Shown: positions 30,273 through 46,424 of the stretch, piece after piece
How the letters are laid out: the number at the start of each line of letters is the position of its first letter
How positions within the stretch are numbered: position 1 is the first letter of the stretch
Notes under the pieces: generated by a model
Seen by the model: only the letters and a program-made list of their open reading frames with translations
Told to the model about the DNA's origin: nothing
The model's database searches: none
Translations under genes and position numbers: made by a program
Assembly (NCBI GenBank): GCA_004764695.1
Contig: SMSO01000031.1
Location: forward strand, 6,678,761-6,742,760
From: Schizochytrium sp. TIO01
Lineage: Eukaryota > Protista > Bigyra: Labyrinthulomycetes
Direction of reading: 5' to 3'
DNA: 64,000 nt

Positions 30273-31556
30273 TTAGGCCTCAGCAGCGAGCTTAACGGCG
30301 GTCGCGGCAGCATCGTCGAGGTCATCAATAATGATGGCCTTCACATCAGATTTGTCGAGGATTTCGCGGGCCTTCTCCACGTTGGTGCCACGAAGACGGA
30401 CAACAAGCGGCTTGGCAAGGCCGATCTCCTTAGCGGCGGCAACCATACCCTCAGCAATGATGTCACAGCGCATGATTCCACCGAAGATGTTGACAAGGAT
30501 GGACTTGACCTTCTTGTCAGAGTCAAGAATCTCAAAAGCCTTGAGCACGGCATCCTTGGTGGCACCACCACCAAGATCGAGGAAGTTGCTGGCACTGCCG
30601 CCGTGGAGAGTGACGATGTCAAGAGTGCTCATGGCGAGACCAGCACCGTTGACCATGCATCCGACGGATCCGTCAAGACCAATGTAGTTGAGGCCGTACT
30701 TGGAGGCCTCAACCTCGCGGGGGTCCTCCTGGGTGCGGTCACGGAACTCAAAAATCTTTTTCTGGCGGAACTCTGCGTTGTCGTCGAAGTTGAGCTTGGC
30801 GTCAGAGCAGAAGACGTCACCGCTCTGGGTCTCAGCGAGCGGGTTGATCTCGACGAGGGTGCAGTCGCACTTAAGGAAGAGGTTGTAGAGGGAGCGAATG
30901 GTGTGAGCAGCCTTGGCGTGGGCCTTACCCTCAAAACCGAGGTTGCGGGCAAGACGCTCGACCTGCTCATCCTGAAGGCCGCTCATGATGTCAATCTTCT
31001 CAGTGAAGATCTTCTCCGGGGTCTCTTCGGCAACATCCTCAATGTTCATACCACCGGCGGGGGAGCCAACGAGGGTGACACCAACGTGGGAGCGGTCGAG
31101 GAGGATGCTGAAGTAAGTCTCGCGCTTGATGTTGAGGCGCTCCATGAGGAGAACACGGTTGCAGGGCTTGCCAGCCTCGCCGGTCTGCTTGGTGACAAGG
31201 AGCTGGCCGAGCATCTTGCTGGCAACCTCCTTGGCCTCCTCGCCCTTGGAGATCATCTGGACACCACCCTGGTATCCGTTCTTGAAGTGGCCACGGCCAC
31301 GGCCACCAGCGAGAACCTGGGCCTTAAGGACGGCATCCTTGCCGAGCTCACCACTCTCGAAAATCTTCTGAGCCTCCTCCGGGGTGTCGGCGTACTTGTT
31401 CTTGGGAACAGGCACGTCGAACTCGCTCATGACCTGCATACTAGCGTACTCATGGATGTTGAGGTTGCGCTTCTGGGTCTTGCGGAGAAGCTGTGCGCTG
31501 CGCGCGGGGCGGCCGGCCTTGGTGGCCATGCGCGAAAATCCCATGAGGCCAGACAT
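30273..31556 (-). CDS. SUCLA2: Mitochondrial succinyl-CoA ligase beta subunit (ADP/GDP specificity not determined)
   Basis: Transit peptide, then LNIHEY, KAQVLAGGRGRG, EINPL, DAKLNFDDNAEFRQ, GCMVNGAGLAM, NFLDLGGG, NIFGGIMRCD and RLRGTN. Confidence 0.96.
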   Translation of the reverse strand: MSGLMGFSRMATKAGRPARSAQLLRKTQKRNLNIHEYASMQVMSEFDVPVPKNKYADTPEEAQKIFESGELGKDAVLKAQVLAGGRGRGHFKNGYQGGVQMISKGEEAKEVASKMLGQLLVTKQTGEAGKPCNRVLLMERLNIKRETYFSILLDRSHVGVTLVGSPAGGMNIEDVAEETPEKIFTEKIDIMSGLQDEQVERLARNLGFEGKAHAKAAHTIRSLYNLFLKCDCTLVEINPLAETQSGDVFCSDAKLNFDDNAEFRQKKIFEFRDRTQEDPREVEASKYGLNYIGLDGSVGCMVNGAGLAMSTLDIVTLHGGSASNFLDLGGGATKDAVLKAFEILDSDKKVKSILVNIFGGIMRCDIIAEGMVAAAKEIGLAKPLVVRLRGTNVEKAREILDKSDVKAIIIDDLDDAAATAVKLAAEA

Positions 31557-31646
31557 TGTCTTTAATGTAATGAGAGTATGTGATAACAGTATAATTCACG
31601 TGTGTTGCTATTGACTTCCACTCGAATCTGTCCGCTTGATACAGTT

Positions 31647-32775
31647 CTGTTGATTGAATCCGTACGTGCAAAAGCAATTACAGTTTTGTTTGTTGTTCAA
31701 TTCACCCGACCAGAACCAGAGAACCCAATATGTGTAAAGAACGGAGATAGGAAGAACAGAATAAAACAAAAAGAAACCAGAGCCGAAATATGTGAGGAAA
31801 AGGACCAAAAATAAATAGGAAGCAAAATGAGGCCCAGTTGGTGCAGGTAGAGTGCAAGAGAGACGGGTGCGAGAGACAGCAGATACAATTTTTACATCAC
31901 ATCGTCCGTATCGAAAAGAAATGGTGGTCCATTTCCATCGCATCATCGTCGTTACGGAGAGAGCACGCGCGCGAAGGGAAAACAGACGTCCATTCATTCA
32001 TTGGCAGAAAGGTCAAACAAATTGCCCAGCATCAGAAAGCACGCGAGGGACGTTGGTTGCGGGGCCACAGCAGATGTGCAGTTGAGCATGCATAAGGAAC
32101 AAAACGAATAGATAATGCATTCATAGAGAACAGCAAACGAACAAGAGGAAAAAATGTCAATCGAATGCGACCAGCAACGCCAGCGCAGCATCCATTTCAC
32201 CGTGAGCACAGTACCGGCCAAGGCAGGCAGTCAAAGAAGCGAGGGGAATGGCGGCGAGGGGAATGTCAGAGGTTCAATCAAACAGATGGTTCATTGACAG
32301 CGGGTAGAGAGAGAGACATGTTGCGTCCAGAGCAGCGACAGGAGGTTTGCATCACATAAATCGGGAAACAAACAACAACAGCAGCAGCATAATCATACAG
32401 AAAATTTATCCGAGTCACAGGGGTAGCAAAGGCCGCAGGCAACACGAGTGAAGGTCAGCACGCAGAGCAACATATCAACAAAACAGAAAGAAATTACAGC
32501 AAAAATAGCACGAGTTCACGTCAGTCATCATTTTCATCAACATAATATTTTCCCCATTATATCTATCTTTCTCTATTTATATAAATATATAAATATAGAT
32601 ATAATCATCAGTCTACCCCAACATCGCGTCAGTCCGTCGCCCGTCTCTTTTCGGTTTCTTTCTTTCATGCCTTCTCTTTCGCTCTTTCCCTGTGTCTGTC
32701 ATGCCCCCCACCGACCCGCACCCAATGCCAGTCGGGGTTGAGGGAACAAAAACGGGGGTGTAGTATGCACCTTAC
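31647..32775 (-). other. Probable long 5'UTR intron of the succinyl-CoA ligase beta gene, with a 914-nt AG-free 3' region (donor position uncertain)
   Basis: Acceptor TCAACAG| at 31647, 90 nt upstream of the ATG. No CT on the + strand between 31649 and 32562. Branch-like GATGACTGACG at 32529-32519. Donor candidates are GTAAGG 32775, GAG|GTGAGA 33077 and GTAAGC 33351. Confidence 0.7.
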
Positions 32776-33419
32776 TGTGAGAAAGGCCTTTCGCATCTCA
32801 GCAAGCTCAGACCTACGATTCTTTTGCTCCTTCGACCTTTCCGAGCGAGAGAGACAAAGTCGGAGATCGAAGAGCAAAGGAACAGGAAGAACCGGGCACG
32901 CAAGAACTAAGGGGAGCAAGCTGAGCCTGCGACTGCACGCACGCACAACGATCACAAAAAGAGCGACATGTGGACCATCATTTCGGTAGGTGCAGCAGAG
33001 ACTTGAAGAACCGAGTCAAAAGAAAAGAACAGGCTTTTTCAAAAAACCCATCTATCTTTTTTCGGATCCTTTCTCACCTCCAGGCCGACGCGCCCGAACA
33101 AATGAAACAAAACCCCAGGAGGAGAACGGACATTGCGCCGGTGCCGAGCGGCAGCAGCGCAGATCGGAGAGGACCCGCGCTACTGCCTGGAGCCTCGGGC
33201 AAGACCGTGTCTCTCCTTGACGCATTCTCGAAGCGAGGTTGAGCATTGCTCTTGATTTGTTCTTCGCTCGCCGCCGTTGAAGCATGGCTGTATTGCAGTG
33301 CAGTGCAGTTTCTGTTCCTGTTCTTAGTGCATGTTAACTTCGCTCGCTTACTTCTGCTTATTCATTTGTTTGTCAACACGCTGCTGTTCCCAAATTTCCT
33401 TTCCGCTGGTTTATTCAAC

Positions 33420-36400
33420 AGTAATAATGAAGAATGGGTCAGAACAGAATTAACAAACAAGCAAAAGGAAGGAGGAAGAGAGAAAGAAAGAAAGAAAGAA
33501 AGAGAGAAAAGGGAAAAAAGCAGGAGGAAAGAAGGAAAGAAAGAAGGAAAGAACGAAGTTCAAAAAAGCGCGTCTTGTGCGCTTCTCCGCTTCGACCGTT
33601 CCTCGATCTCCGGACCTCGCCTGACGCGTACCGCGCGATCGAGCGAGGCCCGATGCTGCTCCCTGTCAATGGCCAGGCTTGCTTGCACCGGGCAATCCCA
33701 GGGATCAGTCTATCTTTCTCTCCGCTTGTGGTTTCCCTATATTTAAATATCCAAAAAGCGAGACGGGCGCGGAATGCGCAGCTGGGACCATCCGTGGCGC
33801 CTCGGCGGGCTTACGGAGCAGCTGACGCCTTCGCGTTGGAGCAGGACTCGAGGCGGGCGGGGCGGGCGAGCTCGCGGCTTGCATGCGAGCGTGAGGTCAC
33901 GCCGCCATGCCGCCGCCCTTGTTGCGCCTCCTGTCTGTCGCCTAGTGTTGCATAGTTCACGCACGAGTGTAGTGAGTTGAAGATTTGAATTCAAATTTGT
34001 AGCTCCCTCGCCGCTTTTGCGCCTTTGTATCTCCGCCCTCTGGGCCTCCTCACAAAGCGGCCAGTGTGCATTCCTCCTGACACCACTGCGAAAACGTCCC
34101 TCTCGAGACGCCCCTCAGATCCCTCACGCCTGGTCGCGGCGACCTTTGAAGGGCTCCTCTGCGCCGTTCCGCGTTTTCCCGCCGTTCTGCGCATTCATGC
34201 AGTTTCTCCTCTCCCACACTGGCCAGAGCGCCGCCCTGTGAGATCTCAGTCCGTCAAAGCGCCAGCCTTGGCCTTCAACCCGCCCGCGCCTGCGGAAAAC
34301 CTGGCCGAGCCGCTGGGAAACCCGATAGACTTACAGAAGCTGCCCTGGGCCGCCCTTCCCCCGAGTCTTTATGCCCCAAGAGGTGGCGAGCGCAGCGCTT
34401 TCGGGCGCGCGAAGATGGTCTTGAGCCATTCTCGCCATCCAGATTATTATTTACCTATTTATCTTTTTTTTTTTTTTTTTTTTTTAATAAGTTAAGTAAA
34501 ATATAACATTTTATTGAAATTTAAAATTCAAATCATTGTTTTCAAGTGTTTCAAAAATAAAATAACAAAATAATAATCATTATAAAATAAAACACAGTAA
34601 AACATTGTTTTTAAACTCGTTCCAATTATTTACTACCTCATATATGGTGCTTTCTTTCCGCAGCGGGTTTCTTCGTCAGATTTTCATGCCACCGACTCCT
34701 ATGTATTTAGGTATCTGGCCACCTAGGCAGCTGTCCAAAAAGAAAGAACTTGAACACCTTCAGAATTTGTTCTTTGCAAGCAGAATGAGTGAATTTGCGC
34801 CTTGAAATCCAAACCCGGTCGGATGAAAATGCCCATTTCTTCCCTCTAAGCCCTTGAATGGGAGTGGGCCTTGAAACCCCGCCTTCGGGCCTTCGCTCCC
34901 CCTGATCTGAGCGCCCATCTTTCGCTCTCTCGATCAGCTTCTCTTCAACTTTGCGGCGCATCGCCATTCAATCAATCCTTTCATCGATCGATTCCGCGTG
35001 AGCAGCGCCGATTTCAACTTTCCGACTGTTAGTTGGATTCTTACAGAGCGGATTTTTAGTTACCTCCTTGGCCCATCTATCTACCCTTTTGCTTAGCAGT
35101 CCCGAACATCTTTCGGAAGCATGAGTAATCGCTTTCATGAATACCAACTAGTCCGTGCCTCCCTAGTAACTACTACCCGGGGGATAGGTACCTCTACCGC
35201 TTGTTGAAGACTTTCACAGTTTGTAGTTTTAAATAATAGAAATAACTAAAATGGTTTGTAAGCGAGTTAATGAATTTGTGAATACAAATGAAAAAGAATA
35301 CTGGTAGGAAAGTAAGTACCTAGAACCTAGCAACAGGTAGGTAGGTAGGTATACCAAAGTATCCTTCGAAGAGATTTGTAACTGAGTGAATTGTTCATTA
35401 GAGTGAGAGAGAACAAAGAGAGAGTGGAGAACTTGAGAAAAGAGGCGTCAGAAGAATGAATGAACGAATGAATGAATGAATGAATGAATGAATGAATGAA
35501 TGAATGACATCATAGTCTGCTTTGAATTAGTTTCGCTCTGAGTTCGGAGAAACGACTTCTGCTTTAGAGGATACATTTCACTCACCGTAGAGACGAGAGA
35601 GCGCGAACGATCGGAGGGACTCACTCAGTTTCTGGGAAAAGCTGCCTCTCATTATTACAAAATTAAAACTCTTCATTCTAAAACAACTTTGATTTAGTGT
35701 AAAAGAAAAGAAAGAAGGATGGGAACACCTCCAGAATAGAACGAAGGAACGGGCGAAGATTTGGGCCACGCGAAACGGAATGAACTTGAACTGACTAAGC
35801 GCAGGTCAGCTCAGAACCAGCGGGCGATCGATCGAGATAGGGCTGAGGCCGGCAGACCCGGCTTTAGAGGGGTCCCGCTGAGACTTTCTGAGGCCGCCGC
35901 GCCGACAGAAAGGTATTCGCCAGGCTTCGAGGAGGAACAGAGGCGCAGAGAAAGAACTCGACGAATTTGCAAATTCGGGCATTCGATCGATCGACCAAAT
36001 ATATTTTAAATAAATTAAAAATTAAAAAAGTAAAATTAAAACAAATAAACGTTTTTTTGTTTTAAATTTATTTTTTAAAGAATGAGTTGGCCTACTTCCA
36101 TTAAATGCATGTAACAGAAAAGTGTAAAGGAGTTAGATTCATTGTTTCTTCTTTTCAGTCTTCTAATTCACAGGCGGCAATGTATCTTTCTATCTATCAT
36201 TCGCTCCCTTTCAGAAGAATGCTGCCGATGATCTTTCGGGCGCTGCGATAAATCCCAACAAAAGCCGCGCAAGGACGAAGATAAGGGCGCTATCGGCCTG
36301 CCTTCCTCAGCCCTCCCTTCGCCTTCGCGAGGCTTAGCGGAGAGGAGGCGCGGAGCGGATGATGATGCTGAGGAGCACTTTCGTCGTCATCGCCGTCGTC

Positions 36401-37222
36401 GCCGTGTTATCCTCCAGGATATCCTCGAATCCGTGTGGAACAGAACACAACGGAACAGAACAGGGCTATCGCCATTCTTTCTATCTATTTCAAAATATTT
36501 TTATTTAGAAAAAGGAATGAAAGTACAAGTTCTAATTTGGTTGAGAGGAAATGACGCGCAGCGATTCATTTTCAGGCGTCATCCTCATCGTTGTGCAAAA
36601 ACGCCTCCTGAAAGCGGCTTCGAAGCGCTCGAGGAGAAGACGGGCAGAATAAGCCTTGGAGAGGTAGGCCCTCGCAGGAACTCAGGTCTTCCGCAGCTCT
36701 GCGCGGGGGAAGACGCGCGTAAGGGGGTTCGAGAATGGCGCTTACTTCTTGATTTCTGGTTTTCCGGAAAGAAACTTGAAGAGAGTCTGAAAACAGAAAA
36801 ATAATGAAACAGCGAAAATAACAATTGAATGTGAAACAATTTTGATTTATTTGAACATCTGCAGTTTAATTTTAGTTTTAATCAAAGAACGACGCCGTTC
36901 CTTTCTTTGCTTTTCGAATTGGGCAGAAGAAGGGAGGACTGGAAAGGCGAAAGGATAGATTTCAAGATGGCTCTCGGCTTTCGCGCTTGCTTGCTTACCT
37001 ACTTACTTACTTGGTTGCTTTCCTTCTTCACGATTGCATGCGCGACAGATCACGCGCTTTGGAGGCCGCCTTTGCTCTTAAGCTGTGCGGGTTTCGCTCA
37101 ATCGTCACTCAGACTGTGAGTCTTTCTGTCTGTCTGTTGGCCTCTTAGGCTCTTGGTCTGTCCTCCCTCCCTTCCGTTTCTTCTTCTCTTTTCTCTTTCT
37201 CTTTCTCTTTCTCTTTCTCTTT

Positions 37223-37265
<43 letters not shown>

Positions 37266-37988
37266 CTCTCTGCGTCTGCTTTTTCCACCCATATGTATAT
37301 GTGTACATATGTATGTATGTGCGTACGTGGCGAAAGCAGTCGATGGATTGATCGATGATCGCCGCAATGGACGACGTCTGCGCGAACGAACGAAAGCGCA
37401 GGCCTGAATGCGTCTTTCAGGAGCGACTGAGGCAGTGTTTATTCATTCATTTGTATATTTATTTGTTTATTGATTTGTATATTTGTATATTTGTATATTT
37501 CTTCATTTGTTTGTTTGTTTGTTTATTGATTTGCAGCGCAGGCGACAGGAGACAGTAGTGTTTTTGATAGCCCACGTATCGACGGAGCTTTCTGCAGACA
37601 GCAGCGCAATTCAATCTTCATCGATAGGGGAGCACAGCGCAGAAGAAGGAAGGATCGATCAGTGGAGAGGCCGAAGCGTGTGCATTTTCATAAGAAGTTA
37701 ATGAAGAATCCAATGATTACAATTGCAAAACAAACGATCAAACAAAAGGAGGAAAGGAAGTCGCTGCGCTGGCTAGCTAGAAGTTGGCTAGTGGAATCAG
37801 TAGTAGCAGCTAGCTAGCAGTCGGCGTCGTTCAAAAGAACGCCTGCAATGAACGAATGCTTCAAGAACATTAGAGACGCACTTTCATTACGAGAAGGACA
37901 CAAAGACTTCAAGAGAGAGAGAGACCAATCAACGAAAATAAACAAAGGCTTTGTGGCATGATCGGTCGATGGCGCTTGAACATCATCA

Positions 37989-38019
<31 letters not shown>

Positions 38020-38060
38020 CTTCTTCTTCTGCTTCTGCTTCTGCTTCTGCTTCTTCTTCG
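33420..38060. repeat. Microsatellite-rich intergenic region ((GAAA)n, (GAAT)n, (CTTT)n, (CTT)n, (GTAG)n)
   Basis: Direct inspection, e.g. (GAAT)n 35455-35505, (TTTC)n 37190-37265, (CTT)n 37990-38030. Confidence 0.85.
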
Positions 38061-41000
38061 CCTAGTTTTCATCTGCTTCTGCTCCGATCAGATAGACCAG
38101 CGCCGGCAGCTCTGCGAGGAGGTCGGGTGAATGGGCGAAGAAAGCGCCGCCGCCGCCCTAAATTCGATCGATTATTCCGCAGGTTTTCAAGTCAGAGAAT
38201 TGGATGAGCTCAGGTTTTGGAAATCTCTGCTCTTATTTCTCATATTGAGAGGAGGAGGATACGGTCGTGCCAAAACTCAACATGTTCAAACAAGGATCAT
38301 AGTGACAAACAAACCAACCAAGAAACAAACCAACCAAGAAATGAACCAACCAAGAAATGAACCAACCAGGAATGCGGTGCGGATGGCCTTCTTGAGCTGC
38401 TTGTATGGATTGGCCATTCAAGTGAGCGATCGATCACCTTTGAGTATACTTTGGAATGATATTTGACGAAATGATATATTCTATTTTTTATTTTTTATTT
38501 TAAAACTGAGGCTTCTTTTTATTTTTATTTTTATTTTTTATTTTAATATTCAACTACTTCTTACAAATAAATGGTGAAAGCAGTTCACATTTGGAGCGCA
38601 GTCGTGAACGAAATCAAAGACAGTCGCAGAAATTAGACAGCCAGACGATGAGAAGCGCCTTGGGGATGGGTTATATTTGAAGATCGTACATGTGTACATG
38701 GTGGCGAAGGAACTATTTTCAATGAGATACGAGGTTGGCTTCATGGTTTGCTTGGAAAAATTAGCCTGAAGAAGCAGGGAATGTGAAATGTGGAATGGCC
38801 TGAGTCCTAACCTTTGTCGGAAAATCTAACTGGCACACCCATAGAGGACACTATTTATGCGTCAGAGCGACGTCATGATGGCGTCAGCACTGCTATCTTC
38901 TCATTTTCTTTTTTTAATGTTAAAAGCGCCTTCGCGCCTATTCCGCTCCTCTGTAACGATCGTGTTATACAACACCGATGGCTTATAGAGCTCAAGGCGA
39001 AATTCGAATTTGCGGCACGCTGGATCAAAGCCAAGACCGTTATTTTGCGTTTTGGTTTCTGAATATGCGACCCCATCGACCAAACCAGGTTTCGTTCGTT
39101 CAAGTGCAAATGCTGATTTCTTGACTCTTGACCTTCATCTTTTAGAATTACATTATACATTATAAACACGGACCGTGCTGGCAGTGTAAGATCTAATACA
39201 GCGAGGGGTGTCACCGCGATTGGGATGTATGACTAACTCATGAGGGAGGGCACCGAGTCCAACATGATCGGTGCCGACATAGCAAAATGTCCAACCTGTT
39301 CTACGATAAGCGAGCAATCTTGACTGGCAGCAATCAACTAAGCGCTATCATCTTGAAAAGAGGCGCACACTGCCACGCACGACATGTTCGTGACTATAAA
39401 CGAATAACCTCGCATTCGGGAGCCCAGAATCCAGCGACGCTCAGGGAGGGTTTCACTTTCATGGCATCTGCGTTAAAAAGAAACGCTCTGGGTTCGGGCG
39501 TCATCCAACACAAAAACCGCCATGAACATCCTACGACGCGGCTGGGCCCTGATAGTGTCATATGCTGGCATCTATCTGCGAGCTTGGAGCGTAGCTGTGC
39601 CTGTTTGCTGCGAGCTTCAGAGCATCTTCTTCAACTATCCCATTCGCATTGTTTTGCTGTTGGTTTTCATTAAATTCCGTTTATTTATAATATTTTATTT
39701 TTATTTTTAAGTGTTAATTAAAACTCATTTAAATTAAAAAAATAATCAAAAAATAAAAGAGAAGAAAGCATTTCCCTGTACATATATATATTTTTCCTAT
39801 TCGTACACACTCATATGGGTGCTCCTCGCTCTTGAACGCGACGACTTGCTCCATTCTTTCCAAAGTCTGCTTCTCACATCGACCTCTCTCCTTCTTTCGG
39901 GAGGTCTCTGCTCAGGCTCCTCATGAAACCCTTTCGATGATCCTTTCTTTTCTCACTTAATAACTTTAAAAAGAAAAGTAAAAGTAAAAGTAAAAGTAAA
40001 ACAATTAATCTTCAAATTCAAAAGCCATCTTATTACTCCTCTCAACAGCACCAACCAGCAGTAGGACCCCCCTAACGCCCCCTACCACCCGATATGTGGT
40101 TGTGGGGATGGCGCAACCACTGGCGAAACTTGCATCCGACGCTTGTACGGACTGACTCATCAATGATTGACTGCCGACACCATCGTGCTCAAAGTCCTCG
40201 GCACCTCGAGAGCCCTCGGCCCAAGGCCCGTAACCCCCGCCGCCGCTACGCCCTGCGCTCGCATGCAGCCAGCCTGCCTGCCTGCCTGATTATGCGGCTA
40301 GCTGCAGGCAGACCTGCCTGCTCGCGCCTTGCGGCAGCCGCCTCGAACTTGGGACTGAGCGCACAGTGCAATTCTCGCGGCGCAGCTGGTGCGGGTCTAA
40401 AAGGCTTGCGAGGTCTTGGAAATGGGCATATCCTTCCTTCTCGGTCCCGGTTTCCGGTGGACGGGCGCCCTGGGCGAAGGGGCTTAGCCCGTCGTAGCAG
40501 GGGCCTAGGGGGCGCTATAATATGAGGGGGGCGCACTGCATCGATGCCGGTGCAAACTACTGCAGAAAAGGCGCATCCTGCCATATCTTGGAGCTATTTG
40601 AGCCTGCCTGAAGATCCGGTACCCTTTGGCTACCTGTTTATCCTTGGAGTGTTGCGAACTTTGCGAAGAGCACACCGCTTCGTCACGAGTAGGAAGTTCT
40701 CAGGCACGCGGGAAATCCGCCAAACGTAAAAAATGCGTTAGTGGTACCGACACGGCGCACGGAGAAATAGGTACTGTAAAACAGTACCATTTGTCCGTTC
40801 GCCGCTTCTGGAGGAGGGTGGATTGTTGTAGAGGAAATGCTGCAGCTGCGTGAGGACAGGCCTTGGTTCTAGTTGCATTTGTACCTCATGAACTGACACA
40901 TAAGGCTGAATTAGAAAAGAGGGGGAGAATTGAGTGCAGAGACTTACAAGAACCACAAAAGCAACAGCAAGAACCTTCTACTGCCATTTTATCAGGTAGA

Positions 41001-41302
41001 TGTGCACTTACGTGCTGGCTATAGCCGCCGTAGAACGCACATCCTGAGGTTGCGGAGTGTGTACTTACTTGTGGGAGAGCAGCTAAGGTAGCCAAGTAGA
41101 AAAGGCCAGCAAGACTTTCGCGTTCTCATTTTAGGTCTGTCAAGTTCTGACTGCTAAACCAAGCGGTCGAATTGCAATCATCAGCAACAAACAGCAACAT
41201 AGGTTGCACGCAAGTCTTCCTTGTTGTGCTGATTTCTTTTGTTTGTTGCAGGCAATCGCGAACGGACACGCGCCGAGGTCGTGTGGCCTGCGAAGAACAA
41301 CA

Positions 41303-41338
41303 CGACGCGACGCGACGCGACGCGACGCGACGCGACGC
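41303..41338 (+). repeat. (CGACG)7 CpG-dense pentanucleotide repeat upstream of the putative TF gene
   Basis: cgacgcgacgcgacg... seen directly. Confidence 0.9.
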
Positions 41339-41701
41339 AAGTGATCCTCTACGAGCTAGCTCTGTAAGACAGAGCGATAGCTAAGGATCGGATTCGACAA
41401 ATCTCGTTAAAGTTCGACAGGCAAATCATACCATATCTTCATCGAGGTGAACGCTTACACGTGCAAGACGATTTGAGATTTCTTCAAAGCATCGTCGCCG
41501 AGCATTCCGTAGTTCTCTGGCGCATCAAGCGGCGTCACTTTCCTCAAGGTCTTTCGTCAATCAAAACGCACGAATCTCAACTTGGCGCATTTATTTAGGT
41601 AATCAGGGTTCGTGTTTTCTGTTTTTCACACGAAAACGCACTCGATCGATACACGCACGCAGTATAGCAGGTCGGTAGGATTTGGAAAAGTAACAATCAC
41701 A

Positions 41702-42747
41702 ATGGCGTGCGATCAAGGTGACACATGGCTCTTTGAGCCCCTCAGTCCGGATACGTTGACGCTTGGCGAAGGCGATCAAGTTAGCATGGGTGATAGTGCC
41801 CTCGATACTCTATTGGGAGATGACCTGCTTAACGAGGCCGTGCAGCTCCTTGGGGCGGAAGATTCTCAGACCAATATCATGCTTCAGAGCAGCGCACCAG
41901 GCGCAAACACTTCTGCGAGCAACAACAGCAATAACAACAACAACAACAAACAACAACAGCTATCAAGACGACAACTTCCCAAATCATTTGTCAAGAAGCA
42001 GTAGTTCTAGTAGTAACATCCGCGGCAGTATGGTGATGACCAGCAATCACAGCTCTCGTTTAAGCAACCACAAGGAGCGTATGATGGCCACTATGAACTT
42101 CCGGCAGCAAGAACCAGATTTCTTCTGTGGGAAGTAACAACAACGAAGATGCTGCTGCCTTCGACTTTGTGAGGCAGCAAGACATGCGTCTTGGCACGAT
42201 GGGTCAGAGCAGCGATGAAGGTGAATTAGAGCGGGAAATCCTTGAGTCTCTTGCAAGTGGAGATCCGGGTAAGCCCGAGGTAGATGAAGATCAGACCTTC
42301 AATTTTGTTGGTGACATCAAGCGTGCCTTTTCCCCCATCAAGCAGATTGTATACAACGGCCCGCGCTCCTCGTCTTTCACTGAGAGAGTCGATGATGACT
42401 GCGTAAGCCCGGAACCCTCGGACTTTTTAATGCCGCCACCTATGCATCAGCCTCACGCTTACAAATCTGCTGATGTTATCAGTGGAATGCAAGCCAGCAG
42501 CGTCAACAATGTCATTAACAGAAATAACAACAGCGTAAATAGCCAGAATAATAAAACCTCTGCGCCGCATCCGTACATTGGCAATAGTAGTAATAGCAGC
42601 AGTAGCAGCAGCCTCATGAGCCGCAAGGCTTCAGTGACAATGCCTAAGGACGACCTCGCTTCAGATCACGAGCCTCTCCTGAACTCGAACCCGAATCCGA
42701 ACCCGTGGCCTTCGGCAGCAGATTATAGGCGCATCTTCCTCGACTTC
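41702..42747 (+). CDS. Exon 1 of a putative transcription factor (N/S-rich), broken by two apparent +1 frameshifts
   Basis: ATG at 41702. Three overlapping ORFs (41612.., 41763.., 42127..) of similar composition step +1 each time. Ends at a phase-0 donor TTC|GTAAGT at 42748. Confidence 0.65.
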
Positions 42748-43477
42748 GTAAGTTTATTCTTGTTTCACTCAATGTGAGGGTGCTTGGGCGTGAGGAAAAT
42801 ACGATGATGAAGGATGGTATTGTGTTGGGATTGAATGAGTTGTTGCGCAAGACAATTGCTTGTGTTACTTCTAATTAGAGGAGAATCGGCGGGGGGCAGG
42901 CTTTTATTTGTGATGGATGAGAGAGAAAAATAACTGCACCGGCGGCGCTCTCAGATTTATACCTCTTTTTTAAAGTTCCCCGCACTGAGAGGAGCTATAG
43001 GTGTAAAGATAAAGAGAGACACCACCACATGTACTAAAAGAAAAGGCTTTTTAAGGACAACTTGACGAGCGAGCCATAAAAAATACTGGTGCCTAATCTT
43101 TTCTGAAGGGCGTGTGGTGTTGCATATTGAAATCGATGCATGCATGGCCTTGAAAGGGCGCGTGGATGTTCAACGCAGTTTCTTAGTGCATGTGTTCCAG
43201 AGATATCGGAGCGAGAGAGAAAGAGAGAGAGGGGGAGGGTTGGTGTAAGGGATTAAGAGATCATTTTGTTAAACGAGGAGTGTGTCTGAGGAAGAAAAAG
43301 AGAACACAAAGCAGCACCGCACCGAAAAGCAAAAAATCATTCAACGCGGAAATCAGAAACCATAAGGAAAGAAAAGAACGCAGATTGAAAACAACAACCA
43401 AAAGCAAACAAAACAAAAAAGAGAATGCGAAACAGAAACAAAAGAGGCAAAGGAAACATGCACGAAAGAACAAGAAG

Positions 43478-43508
<31 letters not shown>

Positions 43509-45266
43509 AATGCAATGACGAAGAAAGAAATCAGAAAGAAGAAAGAAGAAGAAAGAAGAAGAAGAAAGAAAAGAAAAAGAAAAAACTAGCGCTGCAAACT
43601 GAAGAAAAGGAACGGAAAGGATCTTTTAAAACGCTGCTGCAAAGCAAGAGAACAAACAGATACAGATAAGAGAGACCGACCACAGAGACGAAGACAGTCA
43701 CATCTACCGAGTTCACGACAGGGAGATCCAAACTCCGCCTGCGTTCTCTTCCTTCTTCTCTCACCCCGCGAATCGCAGCCTTCGTGCGTGCGCTTTTGCA
43801 GAGGCGGAAGAAGGAAACATTAAAATTTAGAGAGATCCTCCTCTTTTTCTTCAAGTTCCTCTTCTTCTTCTTCTTCTTCTTCTTCTTCTTGAAGTTCTTC
43901 TTCTTCATTCCTCGCATACGTTGCGTGCGGGAGCGAACTAAGTCGTTCACTCTCCCTCCTCTCTCGCGCCTCTTCTTCGCTTGCTTGCGTTCTTTTCTTG
44001 GCTTCTGTTCTTTTCTGTCGTGGCGGTTGTTCCACTCAATCACTCACTCACTCATTCATTCTAAGTGGTCCAAGATCGCGAGCACGCGATCGAGGGAGAT
44101 CCAGATTTCACCGGCTGCGAGCCAGGCAGGAGGGAGATCCAAGAACTAACTGAGAGGCGATCTCGCATGAGAGAAATGGAGGGAGAGAAAGATAGGATAG
44201 CGGAGCAGAGCGAATGGGAATGGGAATGGGTTCGAGAGCGAATGCAGAGAGGACGAAAGGGCTTTCACTCGGGGAGAGATGAGGGAGGGCCGGGGCGGGC
44301 GAACTGAGGTGGTGCGTGTGCAGACAGAGACAGAGAAGAACTCGGATGACTGACGGAAATGCTGTTGACGTTTTTATTTTTGCTGGTTTCCTTCCTTCCT
44401 TCCTCCTTCCTTCCTTCCTTCCTTCCTTCATTCATTCATTCATTCCCTCCTTCCTTCCTTCGTTTGCTCGCTTGGTTGCTTGCTTGTTTGTCGATTGCGC
44501 ATTGTTTGCATATTCAATGTGTTCTTGGGTACGCATTCCATTTCATTCCACCTCATTTCATTTCATTCCATCTCATTCCATTTCATTCCATCTCATTTCA
44601 CTCGGCGACGACTGCCTTTACTTTACCTTTGGGGCCATTTGCGATACCATACTTCCATGGCGGCTCTCTCCCTCCCCGCACTCGCGCACGCGGGCTCTCG
44701 AAATCGAAATTGAAATCGATTCGAAACGATGGACTCCGTCTGCCACGCGATACGATACGCACTGCCTGCCTCTGGGCTGACGTGCGGTCGACGTAATGCC
44801 GCCTGCGAAACGACGCAACTCGCCACCGCGACCATGGCCGCCTTCACTTACTTCCTTACTTCTCGCGCACTGCCTCCTTCATTCCTGCATGCCTTCACGC
44901 CTTCATTCCCTCACTTCTTCCTTCCTCGCCCACCTGCAACTGCTCTCTCTCTCTCTCTCTCTCGTGCCTCCTGCGTCGGCTGTTCATTCGCGCATGGTCC
45001 GCGGCTGCGCGGTTTGGTGATGTCTTGTCTTGCGCGATCTCCGCTTCCCGTGCGGCTGGCCTGGCCTGCCTCGACATCTCTGCGGTCTTCGATTTGCCTC
45101 TCGCGGCGTTGACTCTGACTAACTTAACTTTGTGTGCGCACACGCCGGAACGAACTTGGACATGGATCGCGTGTGCAACGCAAAATAACAATATCCTGCG
45201 ACGAATCTCTGCGCCGAATAAAATACCAACAAACGAACGAACGAACAAACAAATAAACAAACACAG
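42748..45266 (+). other. 2519-nt phase-0 spliceosomal intron with a 926-nt AG-free 3' region
   Basis: GTAAGT donor and ...AAACAAACACAG acceptor. Splicing joins RRIFLDF|LADETKYPLYTVEQL in frame. No AG from 44339 to 45264. Branch-like GATGACTGACG at 44345-44355. Confidence 0.85.
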
Positions 45267-46424
45267 CTCGCCGATGAGACCAAGTACCCGCTGTACACGG
45301 TGGAGCAGCTCGGCGTCTGCAAGCTGACGGGAACGCCGAAGCAGCCGAGCTGGCTGTACTGTGAGCCACGCGTCGGTATCTTCTTCTTCGAATGCGAGCA
45401 CCTGCGCGGCAAGGCCGGATATGGCTTTCCCAAGGCTGAGGGCACGAAAAAGCTCTTCGAGTGGAAGAAGACCTCGTACATCAACGAGGTGCCCCGCGCG
45501 AAACCGCTGGTGTCTTACATCACTGCCAATGGCAAGCCGCGCAAGGTTGAAGGCAACCCGTACACCACGGGCTTTCGCATGCGCATCGTTAAGATTGCCA
45601 ACCCTGATCAGACACAGTATGGAAAACGTGCCAAGCAATTAGTCCTGTGCGACATTCGCGAAGCCCACGAGCTTGCGAAGCGCCAAGGCCCGCGGCCACC
45701 GAAGCGTGTTTCGAAATTCGATTCTTCTTCCACCGATGGCTACTCCATGCATGGATCTTCGCTTCACGGATCGCTTCAGGGCAGTCCACTCAGCACGCCC
45801 AGAAACAGTGGTTCTACAGCAGCAGCAGCAGCGGCTCGGTTACAGCAACAACAGCAGCAACAGCAGCAACAGCAGCAGCAGCAGCAGCATTACCTTCGGG
45901 CACAGCTTCTTCAGCATCAGCAGCAACAACAGCTGCAATCTCGCCAGCACCTCCACCAACATCAACACCAGCTTCAGCAACAACAGCACCACCACCACCA
46001 CCCGCATCAGCTTCAGCATCAGATGACGCAAGATGAGCGCCACGAGTGTGGAAATGGCCACCAAGACCATCTTCCGCAGCGACGCACCATGCCTGTGCAT
46101 TCTGTGCAGACGCCTCGGGACATGCCAGCTCCAAACTCTCGCAAGACTCCACCTTCGATCGACACAAGCCCGAAAGAAGTCGAGTCTCCCGTTTTTATTA
46201 CGGCCTCCACCCATCGGCCGTACCACCCGACGCCCGTTCAGCGTACCCAGCTCGTGCATCCTCACCCCACTCCGGCTTGGGCAGCTCGCGCAACGAGCGA
46301 CATGAACGCAATGCCCTTGTCTCCCCTGAAACGTCTTTCCATTCAGTCCCAAGAGGACGGCGCCAGTTTCGTCAATGGGTCCCCCAAGGGCTCCAAGATG
46401 CAGCGGCGCAGTGTTTGCCCATAG
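45267..46424 (+). CDS. Exon 2 of the putative transcription factor: basic CG-1-like domain, then poly-A/poly-Q/His tracts
   Basis: In frame with ORF 45300..46424. GC3-rich codons in the ordered domain; CAG/CAA poly-Q at 45843-46020. Confidence 0.8.
   Translation, partial: LADETKYPLYTVEQLGVCKLTGTPKQPSWLYCEPRVGIFFFECEHLRGKAGYGFPKAEGTKKLFEWKKTSYINEVPRAKPLVSYITANGKPRKVEGNPYTTGFRMRIVKIANPDQTQYGKRAKQLVLCDIREAHELAKRQGPRPPKRVSKFDSSSTDGYSMHGSSLHGSLQGSPLSTPRNSGSTAAAAAARLQQQQQQQQQQQQQQQHYLRAQLLQHQQQQQLQSRQHLHQHQHQLQQQQHHHHHPHQLQHQMTQDERHECGNGHQDHLPQRRTMPVHSVQTPRDMPAPNSRKTPPSIDTSPKEVESPVFITASTHRPYHPTPVQRTQLVHPHPTPAWAARATSDMNAMPLSPLKRLSIQSQEDGASFVNGSPKGSKMQRRSVCP

Follow-up and report, generated by a model that had tools for sequence, protein, structure and literature searches.

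Branch-to-acceptor distances in yeast introns go up to about 150 nt, and introns with distant branch points were reportedly described in vertebrates by Smith et al. in 1989 and 1993. The vertebrate AG exclusion zones that accompany distant branch points are now an established class, with examples in alpha-tropomyosin, PTB exon 11, and GABBR1 exon 23 (Gooding et al., 2006; PMC1431707). In these introns the AG exclusion zone opens with the branch sequence and its pyrimidine tract and splicing uses the first AG that follows, over verified distances that reach approximately 400 nt, as in PTB exon 11, where UACUGAC is at position –351 (PMC1431707). Longer zones have been predicted, including an unverified one of 1126 nt in human PTP sigma, which spans nearly the whole intron, is represented by 229 nt in the mouse, and contains closer candidate branch sites, and one of 590 nt in Fugu PTB exon 11 with a predicted branch at –566 (PMC1431707). 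U2AF2 binds distal branch points, which are conserved (PMC5378181), and in yeast introns with a long branch-to-acceptor distance it is RNA structure that shortens the distance (PMC3239191). For thraustochytrids, our literature search found no paper on branch sites. The original prediction for the locus described here, that no description of such an architecture in such organisms was known, is too strong, given the established vertebrate class (PMC1431707).

The locus lies in the 64-kb window (the whole stretch of DNA that was analyzed, 64,000 nucleotides) and precedes the gene for succinyl-CoA ligase beta, hereafter SCS-beta. Its features, together with a second zone in the same window that we refer to as the twin, are as follows.

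30273–31556, minus strand: coding sequence of succinyl-CoA ligase beta, intronless, 427 aa, mitochondrial type, with ATP-grasp_2 and Ligase_CoA domains
31557–31646, minus strand: leader from the putative acceptor to the start codon (ATG at 31556), 90 nt, ATG-free
31647–31648, minus strand: inferred 3′ splice site ATTCAATCAACAG/, the first AG past the zone, acceptor G at 31647
[quoted passage not shown]
32497–32506, minus strand: U-rich second box ATTTTTGCTG, 12 nt past the branch-site-like box
32519–32529, minus strand: branch-site-like box GATGACTGACG, candidate branch A at 32521 in CTGAC
32565–32720, minus strand: purine- and AG-rich stretch upstream of the box, 68% purine and 12 AG in 150 nt
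32775–34334, minus strand: candidate 5′ splice sites (G of GT) at 32775 (GTAAGG), 33077 (GTGAGA), 33351 (GTAAGC), 33631 (GTACGC), and 34334 (GTAAGT)
33738–33750, minus strand: TATA-like ATATTTAAATATA, near the beginning of an ATG-free stretch of 426 nt (33791–33365)
44339–45264, plus strand: twin AG-free zone with the same box (44345–44355) and ATTTTTGCTG, inside the intron 42748–45266

The plus strand has no CT between 31649 and 32562 and the minus strand, which is the strand of the SCS-beta gene, accordingly has no AG. A gap scan of the window gives 31647–32563 (916 nt) as the longest CT-free gap of the plus strand, with a runner-up of 300 nt, and among the gaps of all 16 dinucleotides in the window the sole comparable one is the AG gap of the twin (44337–45265, 928 nt), the rest being no longer than 434 nt. 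In 2000 mononucleotide shuffles of the zone the mean AG count is 32.4 and the minimum 17, compared with none in the zone itself. On the same minus strand GA (44 vs 33 expected) and CT (98 vs 85 expected) are both in excess of expectation, so that what is avoided is AG alone, and on one strand only. The edges are sharp, with 12 AG in the 150 nt upstream and 5 AG in the 40 nt past the acceptor; AG density in the flanks is normal, the upstream AGs are spaced a few nucleotides apart, and the AG-free run is far longer than both the neighboring AG-to-AG intervals and the length expected from composition. The zone is not a microsatellite, since its four commonest 4-mers cover just 8% of it. The original prediction of a minus-strand zone of about 914 nt without AG and made of mostly mixed sequence is thus confirmed on both points, as are the positions that it gave for the box (32529–32519), the branch A (32521), the acceptor G (31647, 874 nt from the branch A), and the 90 nt to the ATG.

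The zone is also single-copy in the 64-Mb genome. A genome search for the multi-copy similarity that would mark an introner-like element or an AG-poor repeat returned its own locus alone, the one further match, of 50 nt, falling within that same locus, and pairwise comparison of six loci gave no match at E ≤ 0.01. An origin of the zone as a repeat- or transposon-derived (introner-like) intron, or as an AG-poor repeat, is not supported, given this single-copy status and the absence of cross-locus similarity.

The organization of the leader is that of a distant-branch intron when read in the sense orientation of the SCS-beta gene, whose product matches a solved mitochondrial ADP-forming beta subunit at 4.7e-136. 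The zone ends at a CAG 90 nt before the ATG, and at its 5′ end, 40 nt into the zone, lies the consensus branch motif CTGAC inside GATGACTGACG, followed by ATTTTTGCTG, which is likely to be a polypyrimidine (U2AF-type) site. U content is 52% (pyrimidine 67%) between 3 and 63 nt past the branch A, compared with 30% in the final 40 nt before the acceptor, and neither a yUnAy motif in the final 60 nt nor a U-rich tract there was found. A pyrimidine tract is therefore present beside the distant branch and no good one is found near the acceptor. The five candidate donors are proposed on sequence resemblance only, which is no better than that of chance matches. Further upstream, ATATTTAAATATA and the ATG-free stretch 33791–33365 may possibly represent the promoter and first exon of the SCS-beta transcript, and if transcription were to start near 33.7 kb, as ATATTTAAATATA hints, the zone would lie within the transcript. 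An Rfam scan of the whole window found no family, such as a snoRNA.

Other elements occur in the same region. A (TTTC)n-rich tract of 168 nt at 33406–33575 on the minus strand is likewise AG-free, with a CTGAC approximately 35 nt before CCAG/, and the GTAAGC at 33351 lies 54 nt past that CCAG/, so that a small internal exon of the 5′ leader (33405–33352) could result. The region between the two divergent genes (33900–42100, approximately 8 kb) contains no ORF of at least 150 aa on either strand, and an A/T-rich segment within it has a 23-nt poly(A) run (34463–34485, minus strand).

Conventional introns of the same genome provide an independent view of the box. The 11-mer GATGACTGACG occurs 85 times in the genome compared with 31 times for the reversed control, and about half of the occurrences are in tandem arrays. 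Tandem 477-bp units carry it at G000:C4:246443-265814 (L002–L027) and also at L030 (C6:440-441 kb), where each unit has one exon of 84 nt encoding one leucine-rich repeat (LRR) of the ribonuclease-inhibitor type and the introns are about 390 nt long, with GTAAGT or GTACGT donors and the acceptor ATTCAATCAAATCAACAG/ (CAACAG). In the C4 array the box A is 64 nt before the CAG in 19 of 20 units, and in the two units of L030 the distances are 62 and 65 nt. Because it lies 62–65 nt before the acceptor in these 22 introns, which are defined by coding sequence through their one-LRR-per-exon periodicity and their donors, the 11-mer, by its placement, behaves as the branch box of this organism. In 19 of the 20 C4 units a GAG 34 nt past the box A has to be passed over, and at a further locus (L029) the box is 106 nt before a coding-like exon. 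Every box instance that we read, a set that leaves out about 40 single 11-mer sites, is in the 3′ part of an intron and is followed by a stretch free of usable AG up to a CAG or TAG. The SCS-beta leader shares with the LRR introns the 11-nt box, an acceptor context that nearly matches ATTCAATCAAATCAACAG/, and, among its candidate donors, the GTAAGT type; by sequence, real introns of this genome carry the signals found at its head and tail. They differ in that the LRR introns have 62–65 nt from box to acceptor and tolerate the GAG at +34, whereas the SCS-beta leader has 874 nt without any AG.

The second box sharpens the signal. The strict form, GATGACTGACG followed after 8–40 nt by TTTGCTG, occurs four times in the 64-Mb genome and is absent for the reversed control, and all four sites head AG-free tracts (369, 572, 874, and 913 nt, counted between the box A and the first AG that could be used), each of which ends shortly ahead of a gene start or a coding exon. 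A random 200-kb block contributed a fifth long case, with a variant head.

G000:C3:506404-509414 (L001), minus strand: 369 nt AG-free, ending 35 nt before the ATG of a mitochondrial carrier (PF00153)
G000:C5:609997-613007 (L028), minus strand: 572 nt AG-free, then 40 nt to the start codon of mitochondrial ATP synthase subunit d (PF05873)
SCS-beta locus, minus strand: 874 nt, ending 90 nt before the ATG
Twin locus, plus strand: 913 nt, followed by a coding exon
G000:C31:1013206-1013428 (L034:3206-3428), plus strand: 221-nt AG-free tract with the variant head TTGACTAACC, from the random 200-kb block

At all four strict loci the AG-free tract starts within 35 nt of the box, AG density just before it is normal or high, and the switch from purine- and AG-rich to AG-free sequence seen at the SCS-beta box is also present at the other three. 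Beyond the head signal the four tracts have no sequence in common and are therefore not copies of a repeat. That four unrelated loci carry the exact head signal is an argument for placing the functional beginning of the zone at its head. In the ATP synthase tract one AG 5 nt past the branch A is presumably skipped, being too close for use by published rules. From the end of the fifth tract it is 57 nt to the ATG of an NDUFS6-like zf-CHCC protein, so that in four of the five long cases the gene that follows encodes a mitochondrial protein; a donor candidate, CAG/GTGCGT, is found 300 nt upstream of this fifth tract. GTGCGT was also considered as the donor just upstream of three of the boxes and was rejected, as it is not over-represented (113 vs a median of 105 for its permutations). 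A relaxed signal, TGACTRAC…TTTGCTG, is weakly enriched (38 vs 18), partly through microsatellites, and a rough search for a branch context of general validity yielded no consensus.

The second of the strict sites in the window lies in an intron whose borders can be placed from protein homology. In the twin gene the last 16 residues of exon 1 (ending at 42747 and followed by GTAAGT) align to residues 89–104 of homologue P0002, and exon 2, starting at 45267, aligns without a gap from residue 105, so that the borders 42748–45266 are supported by gap-free colinearity with the homologue; a Pfam search of the twin's exons found no recognized domain. The twin and SCS-beta zones have nothing in common except the head signal. 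The two signals (44345–44385, plus strand, and 32497–32529, minus strand) are 11.8 kb apart in divergent orientation, and the longer second box ATTTTTGCTG is common only to these two among the four strict sites. The chance of two of four strict sites lying so near one another is about 0.002, a post hoc estimate.

Any mechanism put forward for this locus must account for both the head signal and the strict absence of AG beyond it, and we propose that the 5′ leader of succinyl-CoA ligase beta probably contains a spliceosomal intron, with its branch at the head box, and that the zone is the 3′ part of this intron. Specifically, the region would be transcribed and spliced with the use of one of the upstream donors, the branch box GAUGACUGACG (A at 32521) and the adjacent U-rich box would be recognized by U2 and its helpers independently of the distant acceptor, and the branch would form at the box. 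Once the first catalytic step was complete, the next AG downstream, at 31648–31647 and 874 nt away, would be chosen by the spliceosome. Any AG arising between branch and acceptor would be used or would compete, and selection would therefore keep the 914 nt free of AG. Splicing would remove the 28 upstream ATGs that the zone contains and leave a short, ATG-free leader.

It should be noted that the intron and its acceptor could be real and the productive branches located further downstream, at CTGAC (A at 32455 or 32266), at CTGAT (32032), or at a non-consensus site, so that the head box is the most upstream of several or serves as a holding site that delays splicing. The zone does contain three more CTGAC/CTGAT motifs, possible branch sites at 812, 623, and 389 nt from its end, and the ATP synthase tract has a CTGAC 24 nt before its acceptor. 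Human distal branch points make only a small contribution to productive splicing, and their main effect may be to slow it down (PMC5378181). However, an AG-free tract that begins so close to the box at all four strict loci should be seen only if fitness depends on branching there, and at SCS-beta, where the final 60 nt have no yUnAy, the nearest consensus-like motif is 389 nt away. We therefore regard productive branching further downstream as unlikely.

Considerably less probable is that the region is unspliced promoter or leader DNA from which AG is missing through composition, mutation bias, or a constraint other than splicing. The zone is indeed T-rich (37%) and A-poor (17.5%), none of the 24 sequencing runs that contain the stretch is on record as RNA, and large AG-free zones caused by repeats and unconnected with splicing are on record (Gooding et al., 2006; PMC1431707). 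Yet this same composition predicts some 32 AGs, with never fewer than 17 in shuffles, GA is over-represented, the sequence is complex and single-copy, and apart from the twin no other dinucleotide gap in 264 kb approaches such a length. To our knowledge, strand-specific avoidance of AG points to a constraint at the RNA level, for which the only known cause is the choice of 3′ splice site. The association at four loci with gene starts and with the branch box of coding-defined introns has no explanation at the DNA level, and a retained leader would place at least 28 upstream ATGs on a housekeeping gene that is strongly codon-biased (GC3 0.74). It is more improbable still that the region is an outron, with the acceptor at 31647 receiving a trans-spliced leader instead of a cis exon, for while no cis donor is identified and an outron would likewise need an AG-free stretch from branch to acceptor, the twin, with the same head signal, joins two coding exons in cis, neither the window nor the box-bearing tandem arrays gave a match to a spliced-leader RNA family, and we know of no report of trans-splicing in this group.

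The proposed intron with its branch at the head box would resemble the vertebrate distant-branch introns in having branch and pyrimidine tract at the 5′ end, normal AG density upstream, the first AG as acceptor, and no conventional site near the 3′ end. It differs in scale, with at most approximately 400 nt verified in vertebrates and a predicted 874 nt (913 nt in the twin) here, and in setting, since the vertebrate cases flank regulated alternative exons and the SCS-beta case belongs to the 5′ leader of a housekeeping gene, in a protist with few introns. PTP sigma and Fugu PTB have similar AG-free stretches up to the acceptor, of near-kilobase to kilobase length, with far-upstream candidate branch sites that are predicted; in PTP sigma the length is not conserved and there are closer candidate branches, whereas the exact head signal recurs here at four unrelated loci. 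The yeast introns are comparable in that the acceptor lies well beyond the usual branch distance, but their distances are much shorter and depend on a stem. An RNA structure that would shorten the distance from box to acceptor was rejected for the zones described here, as the minimum free energy of the SCS-beta zone has a z-score of +2.2, with 20 of 20 shuffles folding at least as well, that of the twin zone is +0.84, no better than its shuffles, and the predicted fold keeps box and acceptor apart. What would be new, as judged from these sequences, is the scale, about twice the verified maximum, the occurrence in a protist poor in introns, where housekeeping genes would carry such introns constitutively in their 5′ leaders, and an exact head signal shared by unrelated loci.

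The original prediction had regarded the second zone in the window as evidence both of the same architecture in an unrelated gene and of a lineage-wide mode of splicing long introns. The first of these claims is strengthened by the four strict signals in the genome, each heading an AG-free tract of 369–913 nt; the second is not supported by the surveys. In the 200-kb block, which was taken from another contig (contig 31), AG and CT gaps are no longer than 256 nt, and when the 65 ORFs of at least 200 aa in 264 kb were examined, an AG-free stretch of more than 128 nt was found upstream of SCS-beta alone. About 50 other genes for mitochondrial carriers were checked, and none is near an 11-mer site. 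The best SCS-beta loci from metagenomes belong to unrelated eukaryotes and share no more than 67% identity, and the longest AG or CT gap in approximately 150 kb of them is 226 nt. Because these surveys are nearly empty, long AG-free zones of this kind are a rare, small class and not the default splicing mode of the lineage.

How such a class might be used can be considered tentatively. In a joint reading that we put forward as doubtful yet arguable, the spliceosome could search nearly 1 kb past the branch, and a small, box-marked, and mostly mitochondrial gene set (SCS-beta, ATP synthase d, a carrier, and the NDUFS6-like protein) would use AG-free leader introns as a shared regulatory device. 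Retention of the intron, for example, would leave dozens of upstream ATGs and so silence translation.

If the branch of the proposed intron does form at the head box, this would be the longest known branch-to-acceptor distance, about twice the verified record, and it would occur naturally in constitutive housekeeping genes of an organism that is culturable and genetically tractable. That AG is missing altogether speaks for the use of any AG along the way, in line with the linear-search model, and the strictness of this absence, over about 900 nt and across four unrelated loci, amounts to evidence from evolution that the spliceosome would pick any AG within the span. [quoted passage not shown]
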